Position numbers and translations under genes: made by a program
Shown: positions 1,314 to 24,338 of the stretch, piece after piece
Layout of the letters: each line of letters opens with the position of its first letter
Position numbering within the stretch: the stretch's first letter is position 1
The notes under the pieces: generated by a model
What the model was told of the DNA's origin: nothing
Databases searched by the model: none
What the model saw: only the letters and a program-made list of their open reading frames with translations
NCBI GenBank assembly: GCA_000708835.1
Contig: DF237036.1
Span: 1 to 64,000, forward strand
Length of the DNA: 64,000 bases
Direction of reading: 5' to 3'
Source of the DNA: Klebsormidium nitens
Lineage: Eukaryota > Plantae > Klebsormidiophyceae

Positions 1314-4300
1314 CAGTTTTGAGAACAGAGATGTTTTGTCTTCGAGGAGCCGGGTCGGCGAGTCAAACTCGCGCACAAGTCCGGCCTCCATCACCTGCGG
1401 AATATGACGACGTATCAAAGGCAGTCAGTATGCACGTTTCTCCTGTCTTGACACAACCGTCTTGGCATCTACCAACCAGACAGTTGTGTCAAAAATTCGA
1501 AAACCCGGCGACGTTCACACAAATTACCCACAAGACGTCGGCGTCACAACGTGGGGCCCACCTTTGCGGTTGCAGAGAGTTAATTGCAAACCCCATCGGA
1601 CGATCCAAAGGGTTGACGTTGGGGGCTTGCCCCATTGATCGACAGTTCCGATATTTTGTTGTCGGGTCCAAGAGCGTGCCTACTGACTGAATGCTAATTG
1701 CCAAATTTTCAAAGCCCAGCGACCGCAGAGATTATCCGCTGAGAAAGTCTTCGCTCTGACTTAAGGTTTTTGCTGTCCCTTCACAAACGAGCAAAGGCTA
1801 AACGTCGAGCGTACAGGCCTTATATTCCGCCAGAGAAGGTCGGCTACTTCAAATTCGCAATGCATGATTTCGCTGACCGATCTTTTCGCTTAGCGAAGGG
1901 ACACTTGGACAATGTCAAACCAAAAAGGATCAAGATCCTATTCTGACACCAAGAGCCATCAGTTGTCTAACACCATCAGATTTTCAAAAGTGACTCATCA
2001 ATGCTGATTCCTAAAGCCCACACGGTCACAACACCATTATATTGTAGAACTTTGAAAAGTTACTCACCAAAACTCGATCGCTATCGATCACGGTAGGAAT
2101 CCTGTGCGCCACGCTCAGCACCGTACAGTGTTCGAACTCGCGCCAAATCGTTCTTTGTATGAGCGCGTCCGTCGCCGTGTCAACCGACGCAGTCGCCTCG
2201 TCCAAACAAAGAATCCGGACCGACTTCAGAAGTGCGCGCCCAAGGCAGAACAACTGCCGCTGACCAACCGACCAATTCTCGCCGTTTTCCCCAACATCCG
2301 CGTCTAACCCCTTCCCTTTCTCCCTAACCGGCGCGGTTAGCGCGCTCTTCTCGAGCGCCTCCCAGATCCGGACGTCCGAATGCTCGCCCAAGGGGTCCAT
2401 GTTGGACCGTACGGTGCCCGCAAATAGAACCGGGTCTTGGGGGATGATACCAATCCTTGACCGGAGGTCCGCTAACCCGATTCTCAGCACGTTAACCCCG
2501 TCGATCACTATGTTCCCGCGGGACGGTTCCACTAACCGGAACAACGCGGTTATGAGGGTCGACTTCCCACTTCCGGTCCGGCCGACTATGCCGATCTTTT
2601 CGCCCGCTTCGATGGCCAGGTTTATGGAGTGTAAGACGGGCGGAAGGTCCGGTCGGTAGCGGACCTCCAAGTCGTGGAACTGGATGGACCCAGCTCGGGG
2701 CCAGTCCTTGGGGGGCCGATTCACATCGACAACGGCAGGCGCCTCGCTCTCGAGCTTTGTGTATCTGCACAAGCATTGCGAACGTCGGATTCTTACATCG
2801 CTATTGTTTTACCCATCGACTTGTCTGTGTACATTATACTTAGGCAGTCGACAAACATACGAGGATCCAGAGCCTTGATTAACGTTTCCACCCGCTTGCT
2901 TGCAATATGCACTTCAGCAAGAAGAGCAGAAGCAGTAAGAGGTAGGCACTCACTGCTGTATTCTTTCGACGGACACCATCTTGTTCTCCAGAGTGCAGAA
3001 CAGCAGAACGGCCCAGAAGATGCAGTTGTTGAGGGAGAGCCCGTACGAAAGGGACAAGCCCACCAGCCCTGTAAAAGAGAGGTATCCAAGTCAGTCTCTT
3101 GAGGCTCTTTGAAATAGCGGGTTTCAGTGCTGTTTGAATTACGTGGAAACGAGGAAACCAAGTCAACCTGTGGAAGTTCCGTGAAGGAGGAGGAGAGCCC
3201 CAACGGACATTTAAGTATGGAACTGAACGTCTAGTCCTTTTCAAATCAGGATAGATATACTTGATAACCTGTTTCATCTCACGAACCAGAAAGGGACGCG
3301 AACGATGCTAGCTCGCGTGCTGAGCAGTACAACAAGGAAGAACGCCCCAGCGGAAAGACCGAGGGTCCAAATCATCTCCAGGTGGACTGTCGAAACGTCC
3401 CAATAGTCTTCTTTTTCAACAAATTTGTCGTTACTACCCAAAAACATTCACAGGTATGGCAAGCTGACTTGAGCCAACGGGAAGGCCCCAAAAACACCCC
3501 CAAGTGAGACTCACCTGCATCGACCCGCGTGCTGGGTAGAACCACCAGGAAGAACGCCCCAGCGGAAAGAACGACAGTCTTGATCAATTTCAGCCGACCT
3601 TTTTAGCGCTTCAAAGAGCTTCTTACCCCAATCCTCGCTCTTCTTCTGTACTACCTGAAGTAGATTCCCAAAGGAAATCAAGTCAAGCGAAGGGATGGCC
3701 ACAGCAAGGAATGCGGGTTGATACCAACCTGCGTCAACTCGCGTGCTGGGCAGAACAACCAGGAAAAACGCCCCAGCGGAAAGAACAACGGTTCCAATCA
3801 TCTCGAGTCGAACGCCCAGCCACTCGTTGGTGCCCCAGAAGTGGAAGTAGTTCTTCAGGTTGTTGTCCAGTTTCGTCAGGTTAGTGCGTGCAAACCGTTC
3901 CTCCTGCAGCAGAGTCCCGTTTGTTTCAGGCAGCCGATTTGGGTTTCACTAACCCGTCAAAGGGTTTCGTCCAAATCCCAGTCACCCACTTGTTGCTGTT
4001 CCTAACGTGGGGTTGTTCACCAAATGCTGTCGAGTCGGTGCGCACAAACCGCTCTCCTGTAAATCACATGCTAGCTGAGCTCAGCAGCGTCTCATTCGTA
4101 AGACGCTGAGCTCAGCTAGCGATGGAATCTGCGATGGAGGAGGGCTATAAGACAGTTCAGAAGACCGAAGGGATCGTAGAAAGCAGAAGAGTTCTTTGCA
4201 TTTTAAGTTGGTGCGTGCAGATTGTTCATCGTGCAATGGAATCCTCTTCGTTGAAACGCGAGAATTTGACTTCCGTGCGGCTTGATATCATCAGCTCAAC

Positions 4301-24338: not shown

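Follow-up and report, generated by a model that had tools for sequence, protein, structure and literature searches.

Decaying copies of exon borders in the introns of an ABCC transporter gene of the alga Klebsormidium nitens

Introduction

Introners bring repeated sequence into many introns of a genome, as dispersed members of a single family. In plants, tandem duplications reportedly also arise from the repair of paired single-strand breaks; Schiml, Fauser and Puchta are said to have described in PNAS in 2016 short direct duplications that formed preferentially in genic DNA, most of them below 100 bp and some with filler separating the copies. These duplications have reportedly not been linked to splice junctions.

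A duplicated splice junction has been described in the human F7 gene, where the first 37-bp unit of the intron 7 minisatellite spans the boundary between exon 7 and the intron (Borensztajn et al., 2006; PMC1557585). In this intron (IVS7), the authentic donor is followed by a row of competent, silent pseudo-donors, and the most upstream site is chosen (PMC1557585). In the Rogers model, an intron is gained by tandem genomic duplication of an exon segment that contains AGGT (Hellsten et al., 2011, PMC3265369; Ma et al., 2016, PMC4974935).

We analysed the first 64,000 nt of contig DF237036.1 of Klebsormidium nitens (referred to as the window). An earlier note, made from the sequence alone, had proposed that most exons of an ABCC gene in the window are flanked by decaying tandem copies of their own splice junctions, here called echoes, and knew of no published description. 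Our full-text literature search likewise found no paper describing junction-copy echoes in introns, and the main text of the 2014 genome paper mentions neither introns nor repeats.

Results

An ABCC10-like gene with 21 modelled exons

A profile of 24 ABCC homologues was aligned to the genome by splice-aware dynamic programming. The resulting model contained 21 exons, all bordered by GT/AG. At least one further exon, ending near 20690, lies beyond the 21 modelled, and the 5' part of the gene reaches about 22700. The best outside protein matches were plant ABCC10-like proteins, with ~64% identity. Contigs from three RNA runs confirmed every modelled border that they covered within 14000-19999.

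1305..20690 (about), minus strand: ABCC (ABCC10-like) transporter gene; profile-to-genome spliced alignment, RNA contig joints for E1-E6
E1 19143-19318, E2 17828-18075, E3 17016-17220, E4 16283-16440, E5 15373-15534, minus strand: exons; spliced alignment, RNA joints
E6 14521-14613, E7 13823-13923, E8 13053-13275, E9 11541-11861, E10 10342-10504, minus strand: exons; spliced alignment, RNA joint for E6
E11 9389-9600, E12 8510-8680, E13 7530-7667 (acceptor uncertain), E14 6784-7010, E15 5867-5992, minus strand: exons; spliced alignment
E16 5249-5414, E17 4738-4857, E18 3729-3903, E19 2954-3068, E20 2068-2764, E21 1305-1394, minus strand: exons; spliced alignment

Exon borders are copied into the adjacent introns

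Self-BLAST of the 64-kb window returned 62 direct repeats at most 1 kb apart and three inverted ones, and a more permissive scan returned 82 direct local repeats versus one inverted. Self-BLAST found no direct repeat lying more than 1 kb from its partner in the window, and one distant inverted match of 51 nt. In the ABCC gene, a working exon was included in 23 of 28 repeat pairs; most of these took in the splice site, and a few ended within the exon. The partner copy of such pairs lay in the adjacent intron.

As a control, each ABCC exon was scored against its own flanking introns and against all other introns of the gene. More than half of the adjacent comparisons (21 of 40) exceeded the 99th percentile of the non-adjacent controls (14; non-adjacent maximum 16), and none of 40 did in reverse complement. 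This comparison, which the earlier note had suggested and which we ran within ABCC, confirmed its central claim that tandem, decaying copies of splice junctions lie in the introns. Copies of acceptors lay upstream of the exon concerned, those of donors downstream of it. Of the 21 modelled exons, at least 14 had one echo or more; the wording "most exons" thus holds for about two thirds of the exons, but only half of the junction sides were echoed and two stretches of the window, at 24-36 kb and 40-48 kb, were echo-free. Introns themselves may be lacking in these stretches. Part of 24-34 kb was present in the RNA runs, and a Pfam search with the long open reading frames at 23-38 kb gave no match.

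Each echoed ABCC junction had one to four recognisable copies, 68-92% identical, at a spacing of 109-214 nt (median about 165, with a cluster at ~150-190 nt and some two-unit periods of 350-430 nt); the earlier note had given one to five copies at ~120-190 nt. The exon part of the copies measured 38-117 nt, with no favoured breakpoint. Recognisable arrays spanned ~40% of the ABCC intron length, in agreement with the proposal that the process expands introns. The echoes of the ABCC gene were as follows:

19319..19924, minus strand: E1 acceptor array; three full ~152-nt units with decoy AG at 19470, 19621 and 19768, and a fourth relic near 19924
18969..19047, minus strand: E1 donor echo; 91% identical, final 69 nt of the exon followed by GTAAGGGG, 164 nt downstream of the real donor
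17274..17393, minus strand: E3 acceptor echo; CAG and 117 nt of the exon start, 91% identical without indels, 170 nt upstream of the real acceptor
16653 (near), minus strand: E4 acceptor, weaker relic
15918..16241, minus strand: E4 donor echoes, three copies; site equivalents 16154, 16045 and 15918, donor GC or lost in two
15597-15654, minus strand: E5 acceptor echo; counterpart of the E5 donor echo
15171..15253, minus strand: E5 donor echo; GT kept, score 7.6
13364..13452, minus strand: E8 acceptor echo; 172 nt upstream of the real acceptor
12355..12984, minus strand: E8 donor array, four copies; spacings 165-184 nt, site equivalents 12875, 12704, 12520 and 12355
11958..12017, minus strand: E9 acceptor echo; second relic near 12193
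11141..11437, minus strand: E9 donor echoes d1 (site 11346) and d2 (site 11154); GT kept in both
10844..10888, minus strand: E10 acceptor echo; 377 nt upstream of the real acceptor
9938 (near), minus strand: E10 donor, weaker relic
9251..9361, minus strand: E11 donor echo; period 125-127, near whole-unit similarity, donor lost
6491..6704, minus strand: E14 donor echoes; period 158-160, first copy donor 10.4 versus 7.5 for the real site, second copy without GT
5119 (near), minus strand: E16 donor, weaker relic
4957..5039, minus strand: E17 acceptor echo; score 10.6 versus 12.0 for the real acceptor, which lies 155 nt downstream
4056-4376, minus strand: E18 acceptor, weaker relic
3312..3578, minus strand: E18 donor echoes; period 212-214, first copy with GTGAGT donor 11.6 versus 6.9 for the real site
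21863..22543, minus strand: direct repeats with periods 229-614; 5' part of the ABCC gene, outside the exon model

Some arrays are whole-unit repeats and others are not

The E1 acceptor unit consists of ~64 nt of the intron 3' end and the first 88 nt of the exon, and its similarity extends over the whole unit, becoming weaker farther from E1. Whole-unit tandem similarity was also present at the E8 donor (where it is partly kept and frameshifts occur), at the E11 donor and in the IFT56 arrays described below, several of these arrays including stretches of 45-64 nt or more from the intron. Other echoes, among them those of the E1 donor, E3 acceptor and E9 donor, had dissimilar spacers and no whole-unit similarity; the 85-nt spacer of the E1 donor echo, for instance, showed no similarity to the sequence following the copy. 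In many copies similarity broke off sharply within 3-13 nt after the splice site, and the spacers, 50-140 nt long, were unrelated; the intron-derived part of most units was already unalignable. Periods within arrays were nearly equal (214/212, 194/192, 158/160), also where the spacers were dissimilar. Of the two E9 donor copies, the far one was 92% identical to the exon and the near one only 85%; d1 and d2 have flanking intron sequence in common with each other, not with the working junction. The pyrimidine fraction, used as a probe of whole-unit duplication, averaged 0.59 at acceptor decoys versus 0.52 in the background and 0.63 at real sites (P = 0.05). Junction-spanning tandem duplication, as the earlier note had it, fits some arrays, but not the youngest-looking copies, whose spacers are dissimilar.

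Echoes in other genes of the window

The earlier note had also reported the pattern in other genes and on both strands. A minus-strand gene was identified as IFT56 by its match to PDB 8bd7_E (E = 2e-26) and contained several arrays, one of them broken by an N gap at 59661-60013; its exon at ~63377-63589 was preceded by a single acceptor copy (63671-63770) and followed by a donor-side array of several copies. On the plus strand, a mitochondrial-carrier gene had one repeat pair, and a gene at 39.2-39.9 kb carried three copies of an exon start. The wider distribution was thus borne out, but not the name LOG given to the plus-strand gene at 39.5 kb, which had no match in Pfam or PDB.

55560-56276, 56809-58346, 59362-60410, 61128-61569 and 62266-63770, minus strand: IFT56 echo arrays, within the gene region 55560..63770
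39235..39663, plus strand: three tandem copies of an exon start; period about 174, encoding LDCTTW.G.GPGL, the last copy continuing as an open reading frame

Transcripts join the outermost sites

GT was retained in 13 of ~21 donor copies; of 15 acceptor copies, 11 still had AG. Several of these decoys reached or beat the scores of the real sites in position-weight scoring. The three E1 acceptor decoys scored 10.8, 12.1 and 8.7, and the real E1 site 11.4; the E3 acceptor echo scored 10.2 versus 11.8 and was skipped in the mRNA. Over a 6-kb stretch of ABCC, contigs from the three RNA runs joined the outermost sites only and skipped all echoes, E1 beginning at the last copy of its acceptor array. 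The same contigs contained one isoform and no alternative joint at an echo copy; they are assembled, which loses rare isoforms, so that decoys may still be used rarely. The site rule so far is that the outermost site wins, namely the first donor and the last acceptor. These results agreed with the statement that the mRNA is left intact, as far as the main mRNA is concerned. The further statement that the spliceosome ignores near-perfect decoys held in that decoys scoring like real sites had no joints in the contigs; beyond the main mRNA, some use may have gone unseen, because contigs lose rare isoforms and most decoy uses would shift the frame and be degraded.

The copies decay as non-coding sequence

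Indels were present in 12 of 23 copies, and nearly all were of 1 or 2 nt, that is, frameshifting. We assigned changes to lineages with the ortholog from an uncultured relative known from metagenomic sequence (L001) as the outgroup. Changes on the copy lineage were distributed as 25/40/36 over codon positions 1/2/3, and those on the working exon as 5/0/24, which gives 65 changes on the copy versus five on the exon at positions 1 and 2. The frameshifting indels and this split ruled out that the copies are still coding; they look like mostly dead leftovers.

The silent sites deviated from simple decay. Silent-site divergence (pS) was 0.35 and pN was 0.095, pS being about twice the dead-copy expectation. 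The observed pN/pS was 0.27 overall and 0.19 in indel-free copies, versus 0.52 +/- 0.065 in simulated dead-copy decay. Regression of pS on pN gave an intercept of 0.355 and a slope of about 0, indicating that pS did not rise with decay. Where intron parts could be aligned (E1 acceptor, E8 donor R-d2, and an echo-bearing contig of Closterium), silent sites were 2-2.6 times more diverged than the intron part. One stop codon was seen in the copies versus about five expected. Base composition or CpG decay was rejected as the source of the third-position excess: GC and AT sites diverged similarly (0.100 versus 0.093) and CpG only 1.4 times faster. GC3 of the copies was 0.70 versus 0.72. Within the echo arrays, divergence was graded. 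A runs test for gene-conversion mosaics was not significant (P = 0.06-0.9); the sole observation in favour of gene conversion was that the E9 donor copies share derived states in each of the three possible groupings.

Relatives carry echoes of their own

Between E4 and E11, L001 has introns at the same positions, the echo-bearing ones included, and it lacks only the E11-E12 intron. Since introns E4-E10 exist in L001, the echo-bearing introns are old. The Rogers model predicts an end signature, in which the start of the downstream exon is repeated at the 5' end of the intron and the end of the upstream exon at its 3' end. An ungapped 20-nt comparison for this signature placed only the E5-E6 intron above the 99.9th percentile of the controls, with E11-E12 at a z of about 2.3. 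A Rogers-type origin of the echo-bearing introns was rejected on these grounds, as the introns are present in L001 and the end signature is absent in all but one or two.

L001 had echoes of its own at 5 of 18 junction sides, and each echo was nearer to the exon of its own species than to the echo of the other species. The E4 donor, E8 acceptor, E9 acceptor and E9 donor were echoed in both L001 and the window. The Closterium contig showed the same architecture, with echoes on both sides of the exon homologous to E8. These results indicated that echoes have occurred independently in relatives; the recurrence at E8 in Closterium and L001 is a selected-for case, since E8 echoes were the queries. 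In Closterium, the copies on the acceptor side were 81 nt long, in frame and flanked by AG and GT, and a by-eye count of the donor-side copy against the exon gave 15 synonymous changes and one non-synonymous change.

Between L001 and the orthologs of a second relative, L002, exons differed by 6% and introns by 26%, with many gaps. An E8-start echo was orthologous in the two and differed at 9 of 78 positions versus 26.5% elsewhere, which made it the most conserved window of ~1.3 kb of aligned intron. The differences within it were distributed as 5/2/2 over codon positions 1/2/3, which is not codon-like.

Discussion

Local duplication, survival of the outermost-site winners and decay as non-coding relics probably explains the echoes. 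Intron-rich genes would have undergone many small local direct duplications of roughly 110-215 bp, sometimes of two units at once. Each surviving duplication would have taken in an exon edge together with its splice site and placed the extra copy within the adjacent intron, and we infer that repeated duplication or unequal exchange built some of these up to arrays with as many as four or five units. The survivors would be those duplications in which the outermost, original site still wins in splicing, leaving an unchanged mRNA and a longer intron, and the inner copies would decay. Such relics would stay recognisable much longer than ordinary intron duplicates, because the partner exon is held by selection. 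As a hypothesis, occasional gene conversion from the exon may also have refreshed some copies. Survival and detectability alone could yield the association with junctions, since exon-internal duplications would be purged by selection and intron-only ones would soon become unrecognisable.

Several observations run against this explanation. At the E1 donor, E3 acceptor and E9 donor, the exon parts are 85-92% identical and the spacers have no significant similarity. The twofold pS excess, the deficit of stop codons, the non-significant mosaic test and the echo-free stretches also count against it. Two features stay anomalous: silent sites show about twice the divergence expected, and in the youngest copies similarity drops abruptly at the splice site.

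A mutational mechanism aimed at the junctions, with breaks, nicks or template switches tied to exon boundaries, appears rather unlikely to us. Chromatin phasing over exons or DNA damage linked to transcription or splicing, for example, might direct it, and it would place an exon-edge fragment ending a few nucleotides past the splice site about one nucleosome repeat into the intron. The sharp end of similarity and the unrelated spacers are consistent with it, as are the cluster of spacings and the near-equal periods. So are the four junctions struck independently in L001, the echoes on both sides of the homologous exon in Closterium, and the finding that 24-36 kb and 40-48 kb, which are without echo-bearing genes, show no tandem duplicate of this size class. 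However, several arrays are plain whole-unit tandem repeats with intron sequence, the exon-side breakpoints are scattered, and the same association is expected from survivorship and detectability bias; the recurrence at E8 was selected for by the query. A related and equally tentative reading is that streptophyte algae (Klebsormidium, its uncultured relative and Closterium) share a duplication process tied to exon boundaries, with copies ~one nucleosome repeat apart, some of which are selected or come from a diverged version. Such a shared process, together with selection or a second version, would account for the sharp end of similarity, the twofold silent excess and the conserved echo in L001 and L002.

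Copy and exon might also descend from two working gene versions that had diverged (as alleles, as homeologues or through introgression of one copy), in which case the echo would have been born already different at silent sites and with unalignable intron flanks. The low pN/pS, still lower in indel-free copies, and the flat regression of pS point in this direction; the contrast between exon and intron parts resembles that between L001 and L002, and the Closterium donor-side copy has almost only synonymous changes. Nevertheless, we consider this origin improbable. A diverged allele predicts the opposite of silent sites that are more diverged than the alignable intron parts, divergence is graded within arrays, and we see no simple recombination route to some 40 such insertions within a single gene. 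A search with the NBD2 exon found no second close version: after a relative at 89%, the next match was plant proteins at 64% identity, which is weak evidence, as full-length proteins were invisible to this search.

A function of the copies, as splice-site decoys tuning splicing or nonsense-mediated decay, as poison exons or as alternative exon halves, is more doubtful still. Many copies retain a strong GT or AG and have fewer stop codons than expected, the E8-start echo of L001 and L002 is unusually conserved, and the acceptor-side copies of Closterium are in frame and bordered by AG and GT. Against this, half of the copies have indels, nearly all frameshifting; changes at codon positions 1 and 2 fall overwhelmingly on the copy, and the L001/L002 differences are not codon-like. 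No alternative joint was found in the contigs of the three RNA runs, most decoys, if used, would lengthen the mRNA by a number of nucleotides not divisible by 3, and the copies are partial exons, unable to replace an exon.

An assembly artefact, with allelic or paralogous reads stitched in tandem, is so improbable that we reject it: the N gap within one IFT56 array and the short DNA contigs inside repeats at a word depth of 12-15 versus 19-20 would suit it, but the copies differ by 8-32%, which short reads easily resolve, a de Bruijn assembly of a DNA run (whose reads may be the same as those of the assembly) reproduced all junctions of the 6-kb stretch without differences, intronic RNA contigs match the array sequence, and two independently assembled relatives and the Closterium contig show the same architecture.

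If genome-wide, the echoes would be a natural experiment on intron growth, where local duplication of a 21-exon gene's own borders, not transposons, supplied at least 40% of its intron length. They would equally be one on the choice of the spliceosome among near-identical competitors, with dozens of donor and acceptor test cases. The same junctions struck independently in the relative, together with the Closterium architecture, make a shared mechanism in the algal relatives of land plants testable. The silent-site excess could point to past exchange between diverged gene versions or to constraint on intron DNA.

Comparison with known systems

The F7 IVS7 array resembles the echoes in that the repeat unit takes in the exon-intron boundary, with the outermost unit serving as the working junction, as judged by our alignments and RNA contigs, and in that competent pseudo-sites had no joints in the contigs of the three RNA runs. 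In the main mRNA, the donor-side arrays also follow the F7 choice of the most upstream site. Head-to-tail copies of the whole unit were found at the E1 acceptor, the E8 and E11 donors and IFT56, but not at the E1 donor, E3 acceptor, E9 donor and others. In F7 a single locus is involved, its unit is 37 bp long and its copies are almost identical, whereas the units here measure 109-214 nt with 68-92% identity. Acceptors are here affected as often as donors, and the most downstream acceptor wins. The 21-exon gene is involved at about half of its junction sides, and other genes, relatives and Closterium have echoes too.

The Rogers model likewise rests on a small genic tandem duplication that supplies duplicate splice signals, with splicing restoring the original mRNA. 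In that model the duplication is internal to an exon and creates a new intron, whereas here an existing junction is spanned and an old intron is lengthened. Repair of paired single-strand breaks would fit the copies that are separated by unrelated spacers. Unlike introners and transposon-derived intron sequence, each echo goes back to the exon next to it, and direct repeats in the window stayed within 1 kb of their partners. Mutually exclusive tandem exons are whole exons with both sites and an intact frame, whereas the echoes are exon halves with one site each.

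The ABCC gene and its RNA support

The ABCC transporter gene lies on the minus strand within 1400-22720. We collected full-length ABCC homologues with its NBD2 exon as the query, and a profile from 24 of them was aligned to the genome by a splice-aware dynamic programme. The resulting model contains 21 exons (E1-E21 in gene order), running from 19338 to 1305; its borders are canonical throughout except for the first-exon acceptor, which lies beyond the model, and the doubtful acceptor of E13. The nearest outside proteins are plant ABCC10-like. The RNA evidence consisted of contigs assembled from three public runs over 6 kb (14000-19999), and these confirmed all five joints:

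14613/15373, minus strand, ABCC exon joint
15534/16283, minus strand, ABCC exon joint
16440/17016, minus strand, ABCC exon joint
17220/17828, minus strand, ABCC exon joint
18075/19143, minus strand, ABCC exon joint

The RNA contigs also corrected two exons, with E2 extending to 18075 and E1 spanning 19143-19318. Their unmatched end corresponded to an ORF near 20690; thus, at least one more ABCC exon lies upstream. Repeats were also present farther 5' in the gene (20.7-22.7 kb), beyond the model.

Introns contain local copies of the adjacent exon edge

Self-comparison of the whole window yielded 62 direct repeats at most 1 kb apart and three inverted ones, with no direct repeat more than 1 kb from its partner. 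A more permissive window scan gave 82 direct and 1 inverted repeats. The sole distant repeat in the window, an inverted match of 51 nt (90%), links an ABCC intron (20081-20130) with the IFT56 region (60688-60738). In the ABCC gene, a working exon was involved in 23 of the 28 repeat pairs, most of the 23 including the splice site, and the partner copy sat in the adjacent intron. Such a decaying copy of an exon edge and its splice site is called an echo, or decoy, here. The excess that the earlier note expected from comparing exons with their flanking introns was found when we ran this control in the ABCC gene: the best local alignment of an exon to its own flanking intron scored above the 99th percentile of alignments to non-adjacent introns in 21 of 40 exon-intron cases, and in none of the 40 when the reverse complement was used.

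Acceptor-side copies (exon 5' part and AG) were always upstream of the exon and donor-side copies (exon 3' part and GT) always downstream; therefore, the working site is always the outermost of its intron. Successive copies were spaced by 109-214 nt (median near 165), with some two-unit periods of 350-430 nt, and the summed spans of recognisable arrays covered about 6.2 kb of the 15.3 kb of ABCC intron (~40%). Several arrays had copies two units apart that were more alike than neighbours, as in the IFT56 region (61128-61562; 94% versus 81%) and at the E9 donor (11141-11631; 92% versus 85%), indicating either duplication of two-unit blocks or gene conversion.

Echoes in other genes and echo-free stretches

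The pattern had also been claimed for other genes on both strands, and it was found in three of them:

About 55.5-64 kb, minus strand, IFT56 gene; one exon matches residues 114-184 of PDB 8bd7_E (E = 2e-26)
39.2-39.9 kb, plus strand, gene with an exon start in three tandem copies
Plus strand, mitochondrial-carrier gene with one repeat pair

A single acceptor copy lies upstream of the matched IFT56 exon, and a long array of donor-side copies follows downstream of it. The only N run in the window (59661-60013, 353 bases) falls within an echo array of this region, between repeats at 59362-59659 and 60014-60410, and the copy number of the array is uncertain there. The gene at 39.2-39.9 kb had been named LOG; its echoes were evident, but that identity was not confirmed.

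Echo density was very uneven across the window. No echo, and not a single local direct repeat, was found at 24-36 kb or 40-48 kb. Although echo-free, 24-34 kb had 23-45% of its sampled words in RNA runs; ORFs with weak F-box and BTB matches occupy 42.8-46.9 kb.

An assembly artefact was ruled out by the divergence of 8-32% among copies, by matching DNA and RNA contigs, and by the same architecture in independently assembled relatives. A separate assembly of a DNA run, whose reads may be those of the genome assembly, spanned the 6-kb stretch with 0 differences, and low-depth RNA contigs matched intron and array sequence.

Decoy splice sites are skipped by the main isoform

We scored splice sites with weight matrices derived from the ABCC gene's own sites. 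Several decoys scored at least as high as their working site; others had lost the GT or AG.

Scores of decoy and working splice sites in the ABCC gene
Site; decoy score; real site score
E1 acceptor (three copies); 10.8, 12.1, 8.7; 11.4
E3 acceptor; 10.2; 11.8
E17 acceptor; 10.6; 12.0
E14 donor; 10.4; 7.5
E18 donor; 11.6; 6.9

In the 6-kb stretch covered by RNA contigs, the dominant mRNA skipped all decoys, in keeping with the earlier statement that the mRNA is left intact. The further statement that the spliceosome ignores near-perfect decoys held for this main isoform, to which the evidence is confined. Splicing at a decoy would, in most cases, insert a number of nucleotides not divisible by three; such transcripts would therefore probably be degraded, and they would escape assembled contigs in any case.

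Copies decay with an excess of silent differences

Across 23 echo-exon pairs (530 codons), pS was 0.35 and pN 0.095, a ratio of 0.27. Simulation of a freely decaying copy beside a constrained exon gave a ratio of 0.52 +/- 0.065; not one of the 200 simulated copies came down to the observed value. The copies contained only one stop codon versus about five expected; against this sign of constraint, indels were present in 12 of the 23, almost all of them 1 or 2 nt long. We then used L001, an ABCC ortholog on a metagenome contig, as the outgroup. Over codon positions 1, 2 and 3, the copy lineage had 25/40/36 changes and the working exon 5/0/24, the third-position changes being poorly polarised because L001 is close to saturation at silent sites. 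These results indicated that the copies are not maintained as coding sequence. Third-position differences nevertheless remained in excess by about 1.5-2-fold in the copies, and neither base composition nor CpG explained this excess. pS was 0.35 with or without indels in the copy (regression intercept 0.355; slope -0.03, confidence interval -0.8 to 0.8).

Similarity often breaks at the splice site

Alignment extended over the entire unit, including its intron part, at the E1 acceptor, E8 donor and E11 donor and in the long arrays of IFT56; simple tandem duplication would give this pattern. In most other pairs, alignment was confined to the exon-derived half and ended 3-13 nt past the splice site; the 50-140-nt spacers showed no significant similarity to the sequence expected from tandem co-duplication. 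Significant spacer similarity was absent even in the youngest-looking copies, for whose spacers neutral decay predicts about 85% identity and whose exon parts were 91% (E3 acceptor and E1 donor) or 85-92% (E9 donor) identical. At the E9 donor, both echoes had flanking sequence in common that the working junction did not share, and the far echo was nearer to the exon in sequence than the near echo. Gene conversion from the working exon is a possible source of the sharp break, as are inserted exon-edge fragments instead of tandem duplication, and origin in a diverged version of the gene. A runs test for conversion mosaics in the copies was not significant.

Echoes in relatives

The L001 and Closterium loci were found with an E8 echo as the query, so recurrence at this exon was selected for. 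L001, on a 127-kb contig, has the same exon structure as the window, with exons 72-86% identical and introns unalignable. Among 18 junction sides, 5 carry echoes of its own; three of these begin exactly at exon position 1, and four lie at junctions that are also echo-bearing in the window. Each echo carried the diagnostic bases of its own species, indicating independent events or within-species concerted evolution.

Introns of L002, a closer relative from a Logan assembly, were 77-84% identical to those of L001. These two related uncultured algae have an E8-start echo in common (L001, 9426-9503; L002, 1800-1877), the one case in which constraint on an echo was compared across species. No other 78-nt window in the aligned introns was as conserved as this echo (9/78 differences versus 26.5% elsewhere), and its differences were not codon-like (5/2/2 at positions 1, 2 and 3). 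About 50 nt downstream of it likewise lie within the most conserved intron part.

Closterium sp. NIES-54 has the homologous ABCC exon on a contig of 1158 nt (GCA_949281255.1), with echoes on both sides (140-1158): two acceptor-side copies upstream with a period of ~155 nt, each 81 nt, in-frame and AG/GT-flanked, and donor-side copies downstream that repeat every 271 nt. Relative to the exon, one of these donor-side copies had 15 synonymous changes and 1 non-synonymous change, counted by eye, and its intron part was ~20% diverged. The public gene prediction for this locus translates the copies into protein.

Three introns showed further features. Intron E11-E12 (8681-9388) is absent from L001, where both exons form one 400-nt exon (15573-15972). 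Its first 16 nt resemble the E12 start and its last 12 nt the E11 end (sum score z about 2.3), which weakly suggests gain by duplication; loss in L001 is equally possible. Intron E5-E6 (14614-15372) was the sole outlier when intron ends were compared with flanking exon ends (22/40 positions matched, >99.9th percentile of controls), and it is present in L001. The E4-E5 intron has exactly the same length, 748 nt, in the window (15535-16282) and in L001 (6365-7112) despite no BLAST similarity, which may be coincidence.

Interpretation and comparison with known systems

The best-supported reading is frequent small local duplication in gene bodies, filtered by selection. Such duplications would arise at a high rate, selection would keep the original splice site in use, and the inner copies would then decay. 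The association with junctions may largely reflect what survives and stays detectable: exon-internal duplications would be lost, intron-only duplicates would fade fast, as has happened to the intron portions of the units described here, and a copy tied to a constrained exon would remain visible. Sharp ends of similarity, regular spacing and recurrence favour a mechanism that truly targets junctions; we consider such a mechanism unlikely, with a small but appreciable chance of being correct.

A full-text literature search found no account of junction echoes being pervasive in Klebsormidium or in other algae, and the main text of the 2014 genome paper mentions neither introns nor repeats. The nearest described case is the minisatellite in intron 7 of human F7 (PMC1557585): the exon border falls within its first unit, and its pseudo-donors lie behind the most upstream site, competent yet silent. 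The same raw material underlies the gain of introns by tandem duplication (PMC3265369, PMC4974935); however, those duplications create introns, whereas the echoes here lengthen introns that are old, as judged by comparison with L001.
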